Sequence record: NC_031127.1
Strand: one strand, 5' to 3'
Length of the DNA: 64,000 nt
Position numbers and translations under genes: made by a program. The notes under the pieces are model-generated. The model was not told the DNA's origin. It did not search any database and was given only the letters and a program-made list of their open reading frames with translations. This document shows positions 1,023 through 41,441 of this stretch, in pieces (within the stretch, counting starts at the first letter, position 1; each line of letters begins with the position of its first letter).

Positions 1023-1250
1023 ATGAACCTGTATTTGCTAGAACGTCAAGACGATGTCGGTTACGACGAGTTTGATTCCATAGTCGTTGCAGCTCCTTCG
1101 GAAGCTGTAGCGCGCGCAACGAAGCCCGGCTGGCGAGGGCGTTGGACTGATGTGTATTGCGACGAAGACGGAGTAATCCTGAGATGCGAACTCATTGGTA
1201 CCACGCACTTAGAGGCTGGGGTCGTCCATGCATCGTTCAATGCAGGCTGA
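1023..1250 (+). CDS. small hypothetical phage protein between tRNAs
   Basis: GGAG SD before ATG 1023 (MNLYLLERQDD...); the track's upstream extension overlaps tRNA-Trp and is spurious. Confidence 0.7.
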   Translation: MNLYLLERQDDVGYDEFDSIVVAAPSEAVARATKPGWRGRWTDVYCDEDGVILRCELIGTTHLEAGVVHASFNAG

Positions 1251-1280
1251 ATACCGGTGGGCTTCGGCCCACCACACCTT

Positions 1281-1354
1281 GGGGCGCTGGCCGAGTGGTT
1301 AGGCGCTGGATTGCAAATCCTGTTACCGCGGTTCGATTCCGCGGCGTCCCTCCA
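1281..1354 (+). tRNA. trnC: tRNA-Cys (GCA)
   Basis: Acceptor GGGGCGC/GCGTCCC, loop TTGCAAA, T-loop TTCGATT, discriminator T, CCA. Confidence 0.93.
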
Positions 1355-1395
1355 AATCTTCTGTCTCGCCCGACAGATATACTTTACAAAAAAAC

Positions 1396-1447
1396 CCGTA
1401 GAGCCTTTCGGGGGTGAAGCTAGTTGGAGTGGTTGTTCACTCTACGG
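1396..1447 (+). promoter_or_regulatory. structured leader upstream of terB
   Basis: CCGTAGAG/CTCTACGG 8-bp stem enclosing a CC-TTTCG-GG hairpin and a TGAA/TTCA helix. Confidence 0.35.
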
Positions 1448-1496
1448 TCTTCTACTCCTGGGCGCTGGCTCACCCACCTAAAGGATAAAAAGAATT

Positions 1497-1922
1497 ATGT
1501 TCGGTCTTTTCAAAAAACGCGCTAACCGTGCTATGTCTGAAATCAAAAAATTCGACAAACGTGACCTGGCAGAAGCCGTGGTTAACGCCGCTTACCTGAT
1601 TGCGTACGCGGATGGCGAGCTGGAATCTTCTGAGAAATCGAAAATCGATCAGGTGCTGCGTGCCAACCCGGTACTGTCTAACTTCCAGTCCGAGCTGAAC
1701 ACAATTGCTTCTACAATCATCGCTCAGCTGGAAGCGGACATCGACATCGGTCGTCGTGCTGCCCTGCGCCAGATTGCTGATGTGAAAGGCGACCAGCGCG
1801 AGTGTGAAGACGTTCTGGACGTTGCTGTGGCTATTGCCCGTGCTGATGGCGAAATCGAACCGGCAGAAGTTGAAATGCTGAAACAGATCGCCGAAGCGCT
1901 GGGTCTGCGTTACGACGCGTAA
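1497..1922 (+). CDS. terB: TerB-family (tellurite resistance) protein
   Basis: Two A.ADG.....E motifs (IAYADGELESSE, IARADGEIEPAE) and C-terminal LKQIAEALGL, typical of TerB. Confidence 0.88.
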   Translation: MFGLFKKRANRAMSEIKKFDKRDLAEAVVNAAYLIAYADGELESSEKSKIDQVLRANPVLSNFQSELNTIASTIIAQLEADIDIGRRAALRQIADVKGDQRECEDVLDVAVAIARADGEIEPAEVEMLKQIAEALGLRYDA

Positions 1923-1925
1923 GCC

Positions 1926-2108
1926 ATGAAGCTGAAAACCAAGTTATACATCGGGGCCGCGTTGCTACTGATGCTGCTTGGCAACTTCGTTGGGCGAGCC
2001 TTTACGTTAATCGCCTACGTAGCTGTAATCGGCGTAGTAGCCTATCTGGCCTGGCCTGTCATCAAGAAGTTTGCGGCGAAGTCGCAGGCGAAGGTGAAAG
2101 GCAAGTAG
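1926..2108 (+). CDS. small membrane protein (2 hydrophobic segments)
   Basis: 60 aa, hydrophobic core with Lys-rich ends, directly after terB. Confidence 0.7.
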   Translation: MKLKTKLYIGAALLLMLLGNFVGRAFTLIAYVAVIGVVAYLAWPVIKKFAAKSQAKVKGK

Positions 2109-2114
2109 TAATTC

Positions 2115-2151
2115 GGTGCGGGGGTCGTTCCCTCCGCACCACCCTTTTATT
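2115..2151 (+). terminator. intrinsic terminator
   Basis: GGTGCGG/CCGCACC stem followed by a T-rich tract. Confidence 0.55.
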
Positions 2152-2174
2152 CTCATCTAAAAATAGGTATAACC

Positions 2175-3014
2175 ATGAGAAAGGTGCTTTTCGGAATACT
2201 TGCAGCGTTGACGTTTAGCATGTCCGCAGTCGCGGCAGACGAAGTAGTGATTACCACAGGACAGCAGGGCCTGACCTATAACTCGGTCTATGGCGTTAAT
2301 CTGGCCGGTGCCATCAGCGAGTTCGGTACTCGTGCACGGGTCATCCCGTCGAAGGGGTCGTTAGACAACCTCGATAAAGTTGCCGCCGGTGAAGCCCAGA
2401 TTGGTTTCACGCAGGCAGATGCTTTCCAGTTCTGGCGCGCTAAGCACCCGAACGAAGCGCAGAACGTTGACATCGTCGGTCAGCTGGCCCGTGAATGTGT
2501 CTGGGTCGCTGTCAAGAAAGATGGCAAAGTTAAAGATGCGAAAGATTTAACCGATGGCGTGAAAATCGCAGTCGGTGAACCGGACTCTGGCTCCTACGCC
2601 AGTTGGCAATATCTGCAACAGTTGGTGAAAGAGTATTCCAAAGCGGAAACTTACGCCAAGGGCGGTATCCGTTCGTTGTCCAAAGTGGCAACGGGTGAAT
2701 ACGACGCATTCCTGTGGGTATCTGCGCCGGATAAAAGCAACAAATTCCTCGAAGCGGTCAATCAAGACAGTTCTGGTTTAGAGCTGATTGACATGAGCAC
2801 ATGGAACGTCAACGACAAACTGCCTAACGGCCAGTCTGTGTATACGAAAGAAACGGCCAAGACAGACAAGACCGCGTTCTTCGGTAAGAAAGTTGATGTT
2901 CCGTGCACCACCACACTCGTCGTGGCCAACACTGACGCTGGTGATGATCTGCTCGAAACCGTTTCTACCATCCTCCTGAAAAACAATTCACGAGTGATGG
3001 GGGACAAAAAATAA
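2175..3014 (+). CDS. TAXI-family TRAP transporter solute-binding protein
   Basis: Signal peptide (…SAVA-AD), ITTGQQG..Y, SKGSLDNL, IGFTQAD and VGEPDSGS motifs. Confidence 0.82.
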   Translation: MRKVLFGILAALTFSMSAVAADEVVITTGQQGLTYNSVYGVNLAGAISEFGTRARVIPSKGSLDNLDKVAAGEAQIGFTQADAFQFWRAKHPNEAQNVDIVGQLARECVWVAVKKDGKVKDAKDLTDGVKIAVGEPDSGSYASWQYLQQLVKEYSKAETYAKGGIRSLSKVATGEYDAFLWVSAPDKSNKFLEAVNQDSSGLELIDMSTWNVNDKLPNGQSVYTKETAKTDKTAFFGKKVDVPCTTTLVVANTDAGDDLLETVSTILLKNNSRVMGDKK

Positions 3015-3020
3015 AAATAT

Positions 3021-3650
3021 GTACTGACCCAGTGCATCTTTTCGGGCTGGGTAGGGTTAATGTCCCTACCTGCGCGGTGTTCGTTAAGGCTGGTAACGTT
3101 CGCTAAGACCTATCGCATACCCGTAAGTCGATAGCAGCCGGTTACACAAAGAACTATCCATGTGGTAGGTAACCGACCGTTCACGATCTCATTAGGTGAG
3201 CAAATAATCTATGCAAGGACTTCTAGGATTTGTGCTCGACATGATGGGCAGCTTACGCCGCCTCATCAAGCAGTTACGAATCTGGAAGCTTGCCCATTAC
3301 TGGTTTACAGGCGAAAAGGCATCTCGTGAGAGTGTGCCATGCAAACTGCGTATTTACATTAGTATGTTCACTGCGGTGAGCATAGGTCAAGCCCCGGAAC
3401 GATAAGCCGGTCAGCTACGCCTGTAAAATACAATCTGAAAATCATAATGGGATTAAGTTCCCAGATTTGAAAAGGCGACTGTGTGTCGTCGGCGATAACC
3501 CCCCGTCGTGGACTCGGTTATCCCAAAGGTAATGTGAAAGGGGTTGGTGCTTGGAGGCGCTAAGACCGGCGGATACGCTGGCTCAGAAGAAGAAGAAGTC
3601 CATCAACCCCGTTCTCACCTGAGTAACACCCTTTACAAGGCGTTACTTAT
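3021..3650 (+). ncRNA. candidate large (~630 nt) structured non-coding RNA
   Basis: No credible ORF; more than 12 helices, including long-range TTTACAGGCG/CGCCTGTAAA, ATGGGCAGCTT/AAGCTTGCCCAT and GGGGTTGGTG/CATCAACCCC; begins at the G of a TATG. Confidence 0.6.
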
Positions 3651-3671
3651 ATATGCGAAAGCGAGGTGAAC

Positions 3672-3998
3672 ATGGGAATGTATCGTGAAGGCCCTGAAAG
3701 CACGGTGACTCACCGTAATCATGATTACTCTGTGGATGCATTGCTGGATATAGCGGAACGTCATAGCCTCGTTCAAATTCCAGTGTCTAGAATAGAATGG
3801 ATTTTAAACGAGACTACGCTCGATGATGAGCGGGTTAAGAATGCAGATACGGATTATCCAATAATCGTGCTGCACGAAGGAAGTTTGTATATTGTATTAG
3901 ACGGTGCCCATCGCCTTGCGAAGGCGGTAGCCGAAGGCAAAGACACCATCGCAGCCAAGATATTGGTGCCTGCGAATTTACCGAAACCGGTACGATAA
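3672..3998 (+). CDS. stand-alone ParB/Srx-like N-terminal domain protein
   Basis: PIIV...IVLDGAHRLAKA motif; GAGG SD. Confidence 0.72.
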   Translation: MGMYREGPESTVTHRNHDYSVDALLDIAERHSLVQIPVSRIEWILNETTLDDERVKNADTDYPIIVLHEGSLYIVLDGAHRLAKAVAEGKDTIAAKILVPANLPKPVR

Positions 3999-36317: not shown

Positions 36318-38024
36318 ATGCAGCAGATTAACATCACGCACACCACCATGGGGGTGCGAATTGAAGTTCCTATCCGACCCGTTGAGATTGCTATCAAGAC
36401 ATGGGCGGAACGGAATCTGCACGCCCCGAAAATGGGAAAAGAGCGCGGCAAGATTACCGTGGAACAAGGAGATGGCTACTACGCCCACATGGAAGGCGCA
36501 CGTAGCTTTATCTTTCACAAAGCCCACCTTGAGGAAATCCTCTCCATTATCAAGAACGCTATCATTGAATACCGTCTTGAGGCGGAGGTTAAGCACCACA
36601 AGGTCGAGCGGGCGGAGCCTTACCGTTGCACATTTGAAAACTTCGGCACGCCGATGGTAGTGGACGATCCTGAATCACGCTTCTATTACCAGAACGATGT
36701 GGTAGAGAAAGCGCTTGATCCGAACCGTCTCCAGACCATCTTTGCCATCGATACTGGCCGCGGGAAAACGAAGTCGTTGCAAAAGGTGATGGTGCGTAAG
36801 CAAGTGCGTACTGCCCTCATCATGCGTCCGACGTACGTGGACAAATGGCTGTTCGATATCTGCGAAGACCCGACTGGGTTGCAGATTGACAAAGACAAAG
36901 TTCTGGTCTGTCGTGGCGTCCAAGGGATTATTGAAGCCTACGAGATGGGTATCAGTGGGGAGTTAGACCGTCGGGATATCCGGGCGATTATCTTCCCAAC
37001 CGTTTCGCTGCAATTGTTCCTGAAAGAGTACATCAACACCGGCCACTCAATGGGGATTGACATTGAGCGGTTCTACGATGTGATGGGTGTGGGTCTGATC
37101 GGAATGGATGAGGTGCATGAGCATTTCTATTTGGTGTATCTGGCTGGGATTATCCTGAACCCATGTGCATCGATTGAAATGTCAGCCACCTTAGAACCGG
37201 GTGCCGCGAAGACGTTTATCATCGCGCGCTATCTGGAACGTTTCCCAGTCGACTTACGGCTGTCCGTTGAACGTATTAAGGTTGTTGATATCCGCGCGTT
37301 CTACTACACGCTGGATGATAAGAAGTTGGCGTGGTGGGCGACAAAGATGTCCCCGTACAACCACAAGTTGTTTGAAGGTAAGTTGATTCGCGAAGGCTTC
37401 CACGTTTCGTATTGTGAGATGTGGTGGAATCTGATCGAGAAGGTGTATCTGTCCAATTACCAACCGGGACAGAAAATCATCATCTTGTTCTCAACCGTTG
37501 ACATGTGTGAGTTCTTTACCCAGTTCCTGCATCAGAAGCTGGCGGGGAACGAACAGTTCAGCGAGTTGATGGTGGCGAAGTATAACGGTGGCGATTCGTA
37601 TGATGACTTCATCATGGCGGAGTTTGGTGTCTCTACGCCGAACAAAGCCGGTACCGCGATAGACAAACCGGGTATGGTCCACATGATTGTGACAGTGCCA
37701 GTTGATGACCAACAGCTGAACTTACAGATTGCCGGACGTCCACGTCCTGTGCGTGAGGTGTTCGGTTGGGACATGAACCCAATTGTGTGGTTCGGGCATT
37801 GCATGAACATTGCTAAACACGGTACGTACCTGAACTCACGTATGCGTTCGCTGCGCGACACGGTATTGTCATTCAAGGTTGCGACTTCCCCTTATGTTGT
37901 AAGGAAAACGTATGATAACGCCCCCACTTCCAGCCGCCCCAACAGCCCCTTACGCCGGATTGACGTTGGCAGACTTTCTCGTAAAGGTTCTAAGGGCCTA
38001 TCCCGGCGCAGAAAGCGCCGCTAA
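36318..38024 (+). CDS. SF2 (DExH) helicase
   Basis: Walker A TGRGKT, DEVHEH, SAT, QIAGRPR. Confidence 0.9.
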   Translation: MQQINITHTTMGVRIEVPIRPVEIAIKTWAERNLHAPKMGKERGKITVEQGDGYYAHMEGARSFIFHKAHLEEILSIIKNAIIEYRLEAEVKHHKVERAEPYRCTFENFGTPMVVDDPESRFYYQNDVVEKALDPNRLQTIFAIDTGRGKTKSLQKVMVRKQVRTALIMRPTYVDKWLFDICEDPTGLQIDKDKVLVCRGVQGIIEAYEMGISGELDRRDIRAIIFPTVSLQLFLKEYINTGHSMGIDIERFYDVMGVGLIGMDEVHEHFYLVYLAGIILNPCASIEMSATLEPGAAKTFIIARYLERFPVDLRLSVERIKVVDIRAFYYTLDDKKLAWWATKMSPYNHKLFEGKLIREGFHVSYCEMWWNLIEKVYLSNYQPGQKIIILFSTVDMCEFFTQFLHQKLAGNEQFSELMVAKYNGGDSYDDFIMAEFGVSTPNKAGTAIDKPGMVHMIVTVPVDDQQLNLQIAGRPRPVREVFGWDMNPIVWFGHCMNIAKHGTYLNSRMRSLRDTVLSFKVATSPYVVRKTYDNAPTSSRPNSPLRRIDVGRLSRKGSKGLSRRRKRR

Positions 38025-38292
38025 GGCATTGTGTCAGGACCCGGTGATTAACCGGGCCTTTCACTATTACACGATTACGGAACACTTCACATCCTGCTTT
38101 ATCATGCAGCGTGGGTTAACGTATTTCGTCACTCGTACGTCCAGTATTCGTGGTACTGCGGCGTACGAACTTTATTCTTACGAACTGTGGAACAACAATC
38201 CCGCAGGGAATACCGATGAAAACCCGAAGGTGGCCTACCGCCTCTTCTCGGACAAATGGCATGATTGGGTGACTGTACCACATAACGGTTAA
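37912..38292 (+). CDS. hypothetical protein
   Basis: AAGGA SD; overlaps the helicase 3' end by 113 nt. Confidence 0.6.
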   Translation: MITPPLPAAPTAPYAGLTLADFLVKVLRAYPGAESAAKALCQDPVINRAFHYYTITEHFTSCFIMQRGLTYFVTRTSSIRGTAAYELYSYELWNNNPAGNTDENPKVAYRLFSDKWHDWVTVPHNG

Positions 38293-38346: not shown

Positions 38347-38958
38347 ATGTCTCGTCGTAAAAAGCAGCCTGGTTTTAGCCCGCGTGAAGCAGCACGCGAA
38401 CGTGTCCGTAGCATCATGCGTGGCATGAACACGACTGAGAATGTTTTCCTCGGTCATTCGAAAACGCACGCCGAGAAAATCGACCGTGAGTTTGAACGTA
38501 TCAACTCGCTGATGGGCGAAGACCTGAAAGCGTATTTGACGGAGTGGTTAAAGCACTCACAGGCTGCCTTCTTGGGTGCCATGCACGACTTCAAAACGCG
38601 CCTGTTTGCGGTGCGTACTGATGCCGATGCAAAGGCAACCAAACTGATGGCGGTCATCGACGGCCACAAGTGGGACGAAATCAAAGATGTCGTGATTGTG
38701 GCTGAGCTGGAACTGGCGGACTTTGACATTCAGGTGGACAACGTGGCACAGGAAACCCTGCTGTCTATCGTTGAAGCCGGTGCGGCGTATGAACAGCGTC
38801 GTGAATGTGTCCGCGTGGGCCTGAACAACAACTGGACCCATGAAGCAATCCTGACCAAGCTGCGCGAGCTGGATGCCCAAGCTGCCGCCGAAGCACTGGC
38901 AGCGGCAGAAGCAACAGCTGAATCTGTAGTAGAGCAAGAGGAACCTGCGAATGTCTAA
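38347..38958 (+). CDS. helical/coiled-coil hypothetical protein
   Basis: AAGGA SD before ATG 38347 (MSRRKK). Confidence 0.8.
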   Translation: MSRRKKQPGFSPREAARERVRSIMRGMNTTENVFLGHSKTHAEKIDREFERINSLMGEDLKAYLTEWLKHSQAAFLGAMHDFKTRLFAVRTDADAKATKLMAVIDGHKWDEIKDVVIVAELELADFDIQVDNVAQETLLSIVEAGAAYEQRRECVRVGLNNNWTHEAILTKLRELDAQAAAEALAAAEATAESVVEQEEPANV

Positions 38959-40975
38959 CGATCCGCGTCCGTCGTTCGGTGCTGCCGAACCGGAAACGGC
39001 TGAGGTGCGACTTCCTCCGCGTGACACCCTTGTGGGTAAGTCCGCGGAAGAGGTGGCCTTCGAGCTGGTAAAACTCAATCCCACTTTTTCTTTTGCCGAA
39101 GCAACTGAACGCGCGAAAAGTCTGGTGATGTTAAATGCCCCGGTAGAAGATACCCCACCCCCTGTGGTGGATGTACTCGATCAACCGATGATTCGTGAAG
39201 CGTCACCAGAAAACCTGGCGGCCCTGCAAAGCACTGAGAACCAACTGGAGCAGCCGGTCAAACTTGACCTGTCTCAGTCACAATCTCAGCCTGAACCAGC
39301 GCCTGCGGTGCAACCGCGTGCGGAACCCATCGCAAGCATTCCTGCTGCAAGTGCGGAGAATTTCCCTAAGCCTCAGCATGTTCCGGTTAAAGCGGAAGTG
39401 ATTCCTGCCCCAGCGCTCGATGCCGAAGATACTCCGGCTGACCGCGATGAGCAGACGCCGAACCTCTCAAAAGAGAAACGTCGTCAGATTGATTTCGGGC
39501 CAGAACCGCACCGTGCTGAAATTGCCAGCATGGACCCGGAAGACCCACATCGTGTGCTGACTCAAAGTGATGAGCTGGTCGGTACTACATTGCCGCTGGC
39601 AGGTGAGCAGGAAGTCATGCAGTTCTTCGCCAGCATCCCACGTAATCGTGAAGGGCGTCCGATGTTCCGTTCAGCCGCCGAAGAGGAGCGTTATCAGAAG
39701 CTCTTTACGGCGCTGGAACTGACCCCGCCTATCATGATTAACAACCGCGCTGCGTTTGACATGGCGTTGGAGCGTGAAGATACGTCGTGGCAACAGACCA
39801 TCCAACTGTCGAACGGTAAGTATGTCTCTGCGGTCACCGACCGTGGTGCAAATGCCCAAGGTGCGATGGCTGCCCTGCGTCGTCGTCGTGGTTCCGGTTC
39901 TCCGGTCTCAGTGTGGTTGCCTGCAACCGGTATCTTTGTCGGTTTCCGTGCCCCGCATGAAAACGACATGTGTGACTTCGACATTCGTATCACGTCAGAA
40001 CAGTCGAAAATCGGGATGTTCACTTACGGTCTGCTGTTGGCCTCGTCTTCGGGCGTGTATCTCCAGCACATGATCGAACACTCGCTGAACTTTGCGGTGG
40101 ACACCACGTACGACTGTCAGGGTCTGGACATTAAGACCGCCCTGATGGACATCGTGGATGTGGACGACTACTGGCTGCTGGTCATTGGCCCATTGATGGC
40201 GAAGTTCCCAGCGGGTATTCCGTGGAAGCTGCTGTGCCCTAACCACGAATGTGGTCATGAGCGTGAAGTGCGTCTGAATCTGGCCCGCTGTATCCGTATG
40301 GCAGATGGCCTGTTCTCTGACCTACACCGTTCGCTCTGGCTGCGCCAGCGTGGTAAAGGCCCGGATGCAATTATCGGCAACGCCGAGTATCTGGAATACC
40401 GCAAAGAGCTGCCGAAGTCCAAAGCCGCCCGTTTCCATTACGAGCAGCTGGGTATCACGGTAGAGTTCGGTCGTTCGACCATCGGTCAGTTCATTGACAA
40501 CACCAATGCGTGGGTAGAGAAGATTAACAGCTCTGCCACCAACGCACTGGCGAACCATGCAACTGAAACCGAGCGCTCGCAATACATCCGTCTGGCTGCT
40601 GAGAACCGCCGCCTGACCCGTTATGCGACGCACGTTAAAGCCATCATCGTTGAAGAGACGGTGAAAGGTGAACCGGTTGAGACCCGCGAAGAAGATCCAG
40701 ACCGTATTTTCGAAATGTTAGAAGAACTCTCTTCTGACCGCATGTACGTGCTGGCATTTGAAAACGCGCTGTCCACTTACAACGAAGAATCGCGCATGGC
40801 CGTGTTTGGTTACATGGGTCACGCGTGTCCGAGCTGTAAGACCGGCGAGGGTGAAGAAGACGGTCCGTTCCGTGGTATTGTTACCATCAGCCCGGACAAG
40901 GTTTTTTTCGCGCTATCTCGTGTGGTGTTCGAGATACAGAGAGTCTACTTACAACAATTCGAAAATATTGGATAG
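38951..40975 (+). CDS. putative tail/baseplate-hub assembly chaperone (T4 gp26-like C-terminal half)
   Basis: Disordered Pro/Glu-rich N-terminus; DYWLLVIG...WKLLCPNHECGHEREVRLNL and CPSC Zn motifs resemble gp26-type chaperones. Confidence 0.55.
   Translation: MSNDPRPSFGAAEPETAEVRLPPRDTLVGKSAEEVAFELVKLNPTFSFAEATERAKSLVMLNAPVEDTPPPVVDVLDQPMIREASPENLAALQSTENQLEQPVKLDLSQSQSQPEPAPAVQPRAEPIASIPAASAENFPKPQHVPVKAEVIPAPALDAEDTPADRDEQTPNLSKEKRRQIDFGPEPHRAEIASMDPEDPHRVLTQSDELVGTTLPLAGEQEVMQFFASIPRNREGRPMFRSAAEEERYQKLFTALELTPPIMINNRAAFDMALEREDTSWQQTIQLSNGKYVSAVTDRGANAQGAMAALRRRRGSGSPVSVWLPATGIFVGFRAPHENDMCDFDIRITSEQSKIGMFTYGLLLASSSGVYLQHMIEHSLNFAVDTTYDCQGLDIKTALMDIVDVDDYWLLVIGPLMAKFPAGIPWKLLCPNHECGHEREVRLNLARCIRMADGLFSDLHRSLWLRQRGKGPDAIIGNAEYLEYRKELPKSKAARFHYEQLGITVEFGRSTIGQFIDNTNAWVEKINSSATNALANHATETERSQYIRLAAENRRLTRYATHVKAIIVEETVKGEPVETREEDPDRIFEMLEELSSDRMYVLAFENALSTYNEESRMAVFGYMGHACPSCKTGEGEEDGPFRGIVTISPDKVFFALSRVVFEIQRVYLQQFENIG
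40903..40936 (+). promoter_or_regulatory. candidate -1 ribosomal frameshift signal
   Basis: In-frame T TTT TTC heptamer, 4-nt spacer, TATCTCG/CGAGATA hairpin; -1 frame open into the next gene. Confidence 0.65.
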
Positions 40976-41013
40976 ACGCCGACGACGTTCCAGCCGAAGC
41001 TATTATCACTGCC

Positions 41014-41382
41014 ATGAAGCTGGACACCACCTCGCTGTTCAAACGGCGAGACAGTCGACCTATCACGTATCAAGAAGCGCATGACGAGCTACTCTCCACG
41101 TACGACGGGATACTCGGGTTAGAGACCGGTGAGAACAACATCAGTGTCTCTGACTTCGAGAACCCTATCAACCAGAGCTTGTATGAAATCTGGGCGACCA
41201 CGTACGTGCGTGAAGGTATCAAGGAACTGTTTGGTTACGACCTTGATACTTGGCTTGATAGGCCGCGTTGGAAGTTGATGAAGCATCTGGAAATCGCAAA
41301 ACGTCGTCGCGCTGAGCTAGACAATGCTAAGAAAGGCGCAATCCCGCCAGAACTTGAGAAAGAACTGAAAGGGCGCATCTAA
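41014..41382 (+). CDS. tail chaperone 'T'-like segment, probably expressed as a frameshift fusion
   Basis: No SD before ATG 41014; frame open back to 40855; LDTWLDRPRWKLMKHL resembles gpE/gp51-type chaperone tails. Confidence 0.65.
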   Translation: MKLDTTSLFKRRDSRPITYQEAHDELLSTYDGILGLETGENNISVSDFENPINQSLYEIWATTYVREGIKELFGYDLDTWLDRPRWKLMKHLEIAKRRRAELDNAKKGAIPPELEKELKGRI

Positions 41383-41410
41383 GGGAGCTTCGGCTCCCTT
41401 ATATTTTTTT
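41383..41410 (+). terminator. intrinsic terminator
   Basis: GGGAGC-TTCG-GCTCCC + T tract. Confidence 0.75.
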
Positions 41411-41441
41411 GTTGTTATGAGACTCATTTTAGGAAACCGTC

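Follow-up and report, generated by a model that had tools for sequence, protein, structure and literature searches.

A candidate -1 frameshift site conserved in the core gene cg18 of nucleus-forming jumbo phages

The window analysed comprises bases 1–64000 of the 240.8-kb genome of Erwinia phage vB_EamM_Huxley (KX397368; genus Machinavirus), to which it is 100% identical at unchanged coordinates. It contains two adjacent open reading frames (ORFs) on the plus strand, gp56 (ORF1; 38951–40975, 674 amino acids (aa)) and gp57 (ORF2; 41014–41382, 122 aa), both of which are annotated as hypothetical. Close to the end of ORF1 lies a run of seven T residues (T7; 40902–40908, plus strand) that codes for an invariant pair of phenylalanines. 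The codons across this run (AAG GTT TTT TTC GCG, with K-V-F-F as the encoded peptide up to the second phenylalanine) place a slippery heptamer of the X_XXY_YYZ type, T_TTT_TTC, in phase with ORF1 at 40903–40909 (plus strand), as had been pointed out in an initial annotation made from the DNA letters of the window alone. ORF2 is read in the -1 frame relative to ORF1, and this frame is free of stop codons from 40855 up to the TAA at 41380–41382, again in line with that annotation. Counted from the proposed shift site, the -1 frame extension spans 40909–41382 on the plus strand (157 codons plus stop); its last 122 codons correspond to gp57 as annotated, and according to the proposal made here the extension would be read only after the shift. 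The two frames overlap at 40909–40975 (plus strand), a dual-coding stretch in which the 21-codon zero-frame tail of ORF1 with its stop codon coincides with the opening 22 codons of the -1 frame.

We propose that gp56 and gp57 constitute one recoded gene. Most ribosomes would read 38951–40975 and release the 674-aa protein, and a fraction would slip back by one base on T_TTT_TTC (40903–40909), with both Phe-tRNAs re-pairing on TTT, and then translate the -1 frame from 40909 as far as 41382. The resulting isoform of 810 aa would share its first 653 residues with the unshifted product and differ from it in its C-terminal 157 residues (653 + 157; the sizes predicted in the initial annotation were correct). 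This explanation as a whole, with a ribosomal -1 slip that gives rise to the 674-aa and 810-aa isoforms, is regarded as probable. Within a single genome the signal is weak: T7 runs are not rare (23 were observed in the window, compared with 13 expected) and the hairpin that follows the heptamer in Huxley is no better than shuffled sequence. The significance of the site therefore rests on its conservation, for which the evidence is overwhelming. What the sequences show is the arrangement, its conservation and constraint on both frames; the ribosomal nature of the shift, the production and use of both isoforms and any function are inferred.

The overall comparison included about 35 loci of phiKZ-like (nucleus-forming) phages, which represent at least 14 genera. 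For the SPN3US-like relatives, the locus was obtained from 20 GenBank phages and eight metagenomic viral genomes, with ORF1 identities down to about 40%, including the genera Machinavirus, Seoulvirus (with SPN3US), Erskinevirus and Wellingtonvirus as well as Derbicusvirus/CR5. In every SPN3US-like genome fetched, the run is seven T long, the heptamer TTTTTTC is identical and the zero-frame stop lies exactly 66 nucleotides (nt) past the shift point, and the -1 frame stays open for 151–163 codons beyond this point. When the 157-aa piece encoded in the -1 frame was used as a tblastn query, the alignment started at residue 1 in 60 of the 60 listed records, and a coverage of at least 80% was reached in 62 of 63 records. 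Two findings that, according to the initial annotation, would speak against a frameshift were looked for in close relatives: stop codons in the -1 frame and a missing heptamer. Neither occurs. A site that had been described in a single phage turns out to be family-wide.

The wider phiKZ-like set comprised PhiPA3, fnug (of the phiKZ species), Goslar, Ea35-70 together with a relative of 63% identity, RSL2, Halocynthia phage JM-2012, PCH45, Ea277G, PS119XW and RTH11. With the exception of RTH11, the homolog of ORF1 (a member of core gene family cg18, see below) stops 11–45 codons past the T-run in all phiKZ-like loci examined, and the downstream ORF lies in the -1 frame, which is open for 149–173 codons from the run. 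The run itself consists of eight T in Goslar, Ea35-70, RSL2 and JM-2012, of seven in phiKZ, PCH45 and Ea277G, of six in PhiPA3 and of five in PS119XW. Over the span in which the -1 frame is open, the other two frames contain 5–29 stops; stops in the -1 frame were found 4–7 codons 5' of the run in phiKZ, JM-2012, PCH45 and locus L041, and never 3' of it. An in-phase T_TTT_TTY is present in 17 of 19 lineages, the exceptions being PhiPA3 and PS119XW, and the codon preceding Phe-Phe ends in T in 17 of 19 lineages as well, although it specifies different residues (GTT, CTT, ACT and GGT, corresponding to Val, Leu, Thr and Gly). Judged by the sequences compared, the T before Phe-Phe reflects selection at the nucleotide level, acting on a four-fold-degenerate site. 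The extensions of SPN3US-like and phiKZ-like phages are homologous and, measured from the run, aligned in register (hhalign 98%, E 2.8e-13, columns 54–159 versus 56–163).

An ordinary pair of genes, in which gp57 initiates at the ATG at 41014 or by termination–reinitiation after the ORF1 stop and the open -1 frame is incidental, would agree with the annotation of two genes in all GenBank records but one, with the location of the Huxley ATG 38 nt past the ORF1 stop and with the presence of a start codon before the conserved domain in several phiKZ-like clades. The properties of the start codons argue against it. The ATG at 41014 is the only ATG, GTG or TTG in the -1 frame 5' of the ORF2 body (from 40855), and no purine-rich motif resembling a Shine-Dalgarno (SD) sequence was found in the 21 nt before it, as the initial annotation had already stated; of ten neighbouring gene starts, all ten carry AGGA, GGAG, AAGG or a similar motif. 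This ATG is not conserved, being replaced by CTG in the clade of the four genomes Caitlin, ChrisDB, pEa_SNUABM_4 and pEa_SNUABM_9, where the first candidate is located 60 codons in, inside conserved sequence. The annotated ORF2 starts of SPN3US-like genomes are found 36 to 231 nt past the shift point, a spread of about 200 nt with no conserved position. Across the family, the first start candidate lies 12 to 85 codons past the run, at codon 85 in phiKZ, codon 77 in Ea277G and codon 68 in Ea35-70 (whose record uses CTG); phiKZ, Ea35-70, Ea277G, Caitlin and locus L028 have no start before codon 60–85, which is inside the conserved domain. The -1 relation between the two frames, moreover, holds in all records but one.

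Codon-position diversity was analysed pairwise in 15 genomes. In the region 5' of the site, diversity was highest at the third positions of ORF1 (0.40 versus 0.17 and 0.16). The 66 nt past the ORF1 stop precede the start codon of most genomes; here the -1 frame showed a diversity of 0.53 at third and 0.13 at second positions, and this third-position peak indicates that the stretch is coding in the -1 frame. Within the 66-nt overlap, third-position diversity was depressed in both frames (0.28 and 0.26, compared with 0.40 and 0.53 in the single-frame flanks), so that both frames appear to be constrained, as in a dual-coding signature. Judging by this pattern, the zero-frame tail of 21 residues and the continuation in the -1 frame both appear to be in use. 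Conservation of the -1 peptide 5' of the annotated starts, with a substitution pattern of the coding type, is a further point against two independently initiated genes, which are considered very unlikely.

Several observations weigh against the proposed ribosomal slip; they concern individual lineages, the start codons, the surrounding RNA and the run itself. The heptamer is imperfect in PhiPA3 (G_TTT_TTT) and PS119XW (A_TTT_TTC); the -1 peptide located 5' of the ATG shared by these two phages is still conserved between them. In Xanthomonas phage RTH11 (OQ790161; locus 1482–3684), it is the +1 frame that contains the downstream ORF, which makes this the sole record of its kind. The upstream ORF of RTH11 continues for 68 low-complexity codons in a third frame, and the discrepancy, which amounts to one frameshift-type difference, may be a homopolymer miscount. 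In the several phiKZ-like clades in which a start codon precedes the conserved 100-residue domain, separate initiation could add expression. The trans-frame 810-aa product, finally, is predicted from the arrangement of the reading frames.

In the RNA around the site, no conserved stimulator was found. The initial annotation had drawn attention to a perfect 7-bp hairpin located 4 nt 3' of the heptamer, which is indeed present at 40914–40936 on the plus strand (TATCTCG at 40914–40920 and CGAGATA at 40930–40936, with a 9-nt loop) and represents the minimum free energy structure of the 50 nt 3' of the heptamer (-7.1 kcal/mol). The hairpin gains no stability over shuffled sequence (z +0.93, weaker than the mean shuffle), and an 88-nt fold at the Huxley site shows no excess stability over shuffles either (z +0.90). 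Of 14 sequences, 12 retain its 5-bp core; the outer two pairs are restricted to Machinavirus and the stem is broken in Wellingtonvirus, with no compensatory changes or covariation in the stem among the 14 sequences. The consensus fold calculated with RNAalifold did not recover this hairpin; it instead pairs the invariant CCGGAC at 40893–40898 with 40926–40931, inside the hairpin, which would enclose the slip site. This alternative pairing showed no covariation, and both of its segments are under coding constraint. As a conserved stimulator, the hairpin was rejected on the grounds of its z score (+0.9), the lack of compensatory change and its absence from the RNAalifold consensus. Of the features whose conservation was in question, the heptamer and the open -1 frame are kept, but the hairpin is not conserved outside Machinavirus, within which it may help locally. 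Among the 14 clades compared, Goslar alone has a hairpin of significant stability 3' of its run (-16.7 kcal/mol, z -2.09); in the other 13, downstream folds do not outperform shuffles. The Goslar hairpin begins 7 nt after the T8 run (locus 3675–3711) and is a possible lineage-specific stimulator. No conserved SD-like element was found upstream of the site.

As a T homopolymer, the run is to the same degree a potential slippage site for RNA polymerase. If the phage RNA polymerase stuttered on the T-run, mRNAs with one extra U would be generated, from which the 810-aa isoform would arise by ordinary translation. In accordance with such transcriptional slippage, the conserved element is a homopolymer of 5–8 T rather than any heptamer, no conserved stimulatory RNA structure was found, the T selected in front of Phe-Phe not only completes the heptamer but also makes the run longer, and nucleus-forming phages use their own multisubunit polymerases (as annotated). 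Polymerases of the bacterial type usually require about nine or more identical residues to slip efficiently, whereas the runs at this locus are short (seven in all SPN3US-like genomes and only five to six in PS119XW and PhiPA3), and runs of 7–8 are always in heptamer phase; neither of these points is decisive. The sequence data do not separate ribosomal from transcriptional slippage, because both favour a longer T-run. The simplest mechanism is a simultaneous slip of both Phe-tRNAs on T_TTT_TTY; transcriptional slippage, its main rival, is judged to be rather unlikely. Recoding of some kind at the T-run of cg18 is very likely to be real, and it is likely, if less firmly so, to be ribosomal.

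Homopolymer runs are error-prone, and a sequencing error in the run or a recently broken gene might also leave two ORFs in different frames. Besides RTH11 with its different frame relation, the record of Enterobacteria phage SEGD1 (Seoulvirus, KU726251; locus 1096–3483) would fit such an artefact. In SEGD1, a single 795-aa ORF is annotated across both frames; either a fusion that arose naturally or a mistake in the assembly could account for it. SEGD1 and SPN3US do not differ in their T7 run, however, and the single ORF is due to one frame-changing difference located 5' of the run; the record was set aside as evidence of a natural in-frame fusion. A search of database representatives for such fusions yielded only short stand-alone ORF2 calls with scattered N-termini and one 312-aa fragment (P0030). 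This protein matches ORF1 residues 427–619 and then, past an unrelated 33-residue bridge, residues 1–80 of the -1 piece; it was likewise set aside, as its frame changes 5' of the run and it probably stems from an error-prone contig. More than 60 genomes and metagenomic viral contigs, sequenced independently of one another, share the run length and the frame relation, and both frames are under constraint, which makes an artefact or gene decay extremely improbable.

By sequence homology, with synteny as a possible further argument, ORF1 belongs to Chimalliviridae core gene cg18 (the phiKZ gp77 family). Distant homologs with 19–24% identity were detected by tblastn in 172 phage records, and the notes in these records name phiKZ gp077, 201phi2-1 gp136, PhiPA3 gp074 and EL gp47; the Goslar homolog is gp081. 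In the core gene table of Prichard et al. 2023 (PMC10299810, Table S3), the entry for cg18 (Goslar gp081, phiKZ gp077 and RAY gp267) reads "hypothetical protein", and among core genes cg1–cg58 of that table the downstream extension was not seen. A search of the main text of the same paper gave no mention of a frameshift. The N-terminal part of ORF1, about 200 aa in length, is variable and disordered and is followed by a conserved body; F652-F653 are invariant, and other invariant residues in the family alignment include W280, G316, G327 and G360. Four near-invariant cysteines (C429, C434, C626 and C629) are kept in nine of ten clades and are absent in RSL2. Residues 1–200 (38951–39550) are rich in Pro, Glu and Ala and predicted to be disordered; this region differs in length among relatives and is absent or short in the phiKZ-like clades.

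The genes 5' of gp56 are the helicase gene gp53 and two small genes, and those 3' of gp57 are gp58, the gene for the RNA polymerase beta subunit (gp59), gp60 and the gene for a B-family DNA polymerase. The gene order around the gp56 and gp57 homologs of relatives matches that in Huxley. Synteny was also compared with the cg19–cg20 pair (phiKZ gp79–gp80, an RNA polymerase subunit). Directly 3' of the locus, a 284-aa protein (gp58) and the RNA polymerase beta subunit (gp59) are encoded one after the other, and phiKZ gp77 is flanked by a 285-aa protein and an RNA polymerase subunit. The similarity of gp58 (284 aa) to phiKZ gp79 (285 aa) is borderline (BLASTP E 0.059), and gp55 (38347–38958) shows no BLASTP similarity to phiKZ gp78 (E 24), although their positions correspond.

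For ORF1, the extension and the family profile, no sequence match was found in Pfam, NCBIfam or the PDB, the last of which was searched with single sequences and with the profile; a search of Pfam at E ≤ 1 gave no match for ten of ten family members. The PHROGs that match the ORF1 family are of no assigned function. An AlphaFold2 model of ORF1, built from a 17-sequence alignment, reached a mean predicted local distance difference test (pLDDT) score of 60, with the first ~200 residues disordered and residues ~320–630 at 70–89. Compared with the folds in the PDB, this model gave no match (best E 0.9). Besides family members, Foldseek searches against BFVD returned, at rank 13, a protein of 284 aa that carries the name "Baseplate hub assembly protein, bacteriophage T4-like" (E 5e-6, template modelling (TM) scores 0.22/0.43, at a query pLDDT of 60). 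In addition, the record of one relative is annotated "T4 gp26 like". The extension folded alone gave an unusable model (pLDDT 42, mostly helical).

According to the initial annotation, the two products would be a jumbo-phage counterpart of the tail assembly chaperones G and GT, with a gp26-like chaperone as the upstream protein. In support of this idea, the locus shares the logic of a -1 shift late in the upstream ORF that yields two products with a common N-terminus, a likeness of anatomy only. The Foldseek match and the "T4 gp26 like" record could be added, but they would point to an assembly factor of the hub and not of the tail tube. In G/GT-type pairs, the gene position between the tail tube and tape-measure genes is defining. 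The neighbours of gp56 and gp57, by contrast, encode a helicase and RNA and DNA polymerase subunits, the upstream part comprises 653 aa rather than about 100–150 aa, and no match to a tail chaperone was obtained in Pfam, NCBIfam, PHROG functions or the PDB. A search of the preprint on the Goslar virion structure gave no mention of the Goslar proteins gp81 and gp82, which fits any non-virion role. Of the programmed shift and the G/GT pair it was said to produce, the shift is strongly supported by the slip site, the open frame and the -1 peptide, which are conserved even in relatives without any start codon; the tail chaperone role does not withstand the comparison of gene position, protein size and family matches and is most improbable. 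For the gp26-like label, the Foldseek match gives weak support; no sequence-profile match was found, and the gene lies outside any baseplate or hub cluster. A possible distant resemblance of the modelled ORF1 fold to the T4 gp26 type is the sole functional lead and would not confer membership in that family.

Two features of the neighbourhood bear on the transcription unit and on the calling of adjacent genes. A strong intrinsic-terminator-like hairpin with a 9-bp GC-rich stem and a T7 tail is located at 41380–41411 (plus strand). This hairpin begins at the -1 frame stop codon, and the recoded gene therefore probably closes the transcription unit. Upstream, gp55 overlaps the start of ORF1 by 8 nt. 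The small gene gp54 (37912–38292, plus strand) is annotated from a TTG at 37960; the ATG at 37912 and the peptide that follows it are conserved in six of six relatives checked, which gives a 126-aa protein. The first 113 nt of gp54 overlap the 3' end of the helicase gene (36318–38024) in the +1 frame. A second recoding site at this overlap was considered and rejected, because the conserved ATG explains the arrangement as a mis-called start with a dual-coding overlap.

The proposed mechanism has close parallels in known systems. Gene 10 of phage T7 gives rise to the capsid protein 10A and to a minor capsid product, 10B, with a longer alternative C-terminus, through a -1 shift that takes place a few codons before the stop codon in a U-rich stretch containing Phe codons. 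Both there and in Huxley, a long protein would be accompanied by a minor C-terminal isoform that arises by a -1 shift just before the stop. The protein and its role differ, however, and in the Huxley family the extension of about 157 aa has its own conserved domain and the arrangement is kept throughout a virus family whose sequences have diverged strongly. Frameshifts in lambda G/GT and other tail assembly chaperone genes were reportedly described by Xu, Hendrix and Duda in 2004. These pairs resemble cg18 in having a heptamer late in the upstream ORF as the site of the -1 shift, in the common N-terminus, in the wide conservation and in the routine mis-annotation as two genes; they are unlike it in that cg18 does not lie between tube and tape-measure genes, has an upstream part about five times larger and gives no family match.

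In the dnaX gene of E. coli, the shift leads to the shorter product and depends on strong stimulators, namely an upstream SD-like element and a downstream hairpin. Like dnaX (tau/gamma), the Huxley locus has a homopolymer-type heptamer, lies in a replication block and would yield two isoforms with a common N-terminal body, but in cg18 it is the longer product that would result from the shift, and the search for a conserved stimulator gave none. Gp26 of phage T4 is a hub assembly factor and not a G/GT chaperone, and its gene gives a second, shorter product by internal initiation. Here the likeness consists of a possible distant fold relation (Foldseek E 5e-6) and of two related products per gene, whereas the cg18 protein is three times larger, has a C4 cysteine motif, is encoded outside the baseplate module and would obtain its second product by frameshifting. 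No published report of a frameshift in the cg18 gene was found in full-text searches, closed-access papers being outside their reach. The cg18 site is a new instance of a known mechanism that was previously unannotated in this gene family; what is unusual about it is the depth of its conservation together with the absence of a visible stimulator.

Taken over the whole family, the recoding site is likely to be an ancient property of cg18. Every member would then have two C-terminal isoforms, and the extension domain of about 100 residues would be an unrecognised core component without its own initiation codon, which would explain why the annotated ORF2 starts are arbitrary. Both C-termini would be under selection and the shift ratio would set their stoichiometry, possibly in an assembly factor distantly related to T4 gp26.

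Nucleus-forming jumbo phages, including phiKZ, PhiPA3, 201phi2-1, Goslar and SPN3US, have been studied heavily, and the core of 68 genes that they share serves as a parts list. One of these core genes, cg18, appears to be read in two frames throughout the family. If this is true, the downstream "gene" is mis-annotated in at least 172 public genomes, with starts that cut into conserved sequence, and the long isoform would be invisible to proteomic databases built on current annotations. Knock-out and transposon maps would be misinterpreted wherever the two ORFs are counted as independent genes. The family would also provide a deeply conserved frameshift site that has no obvious stimulator, at which ribosomal and transcriptional slippage would be separable with types of data that exist for such phages.

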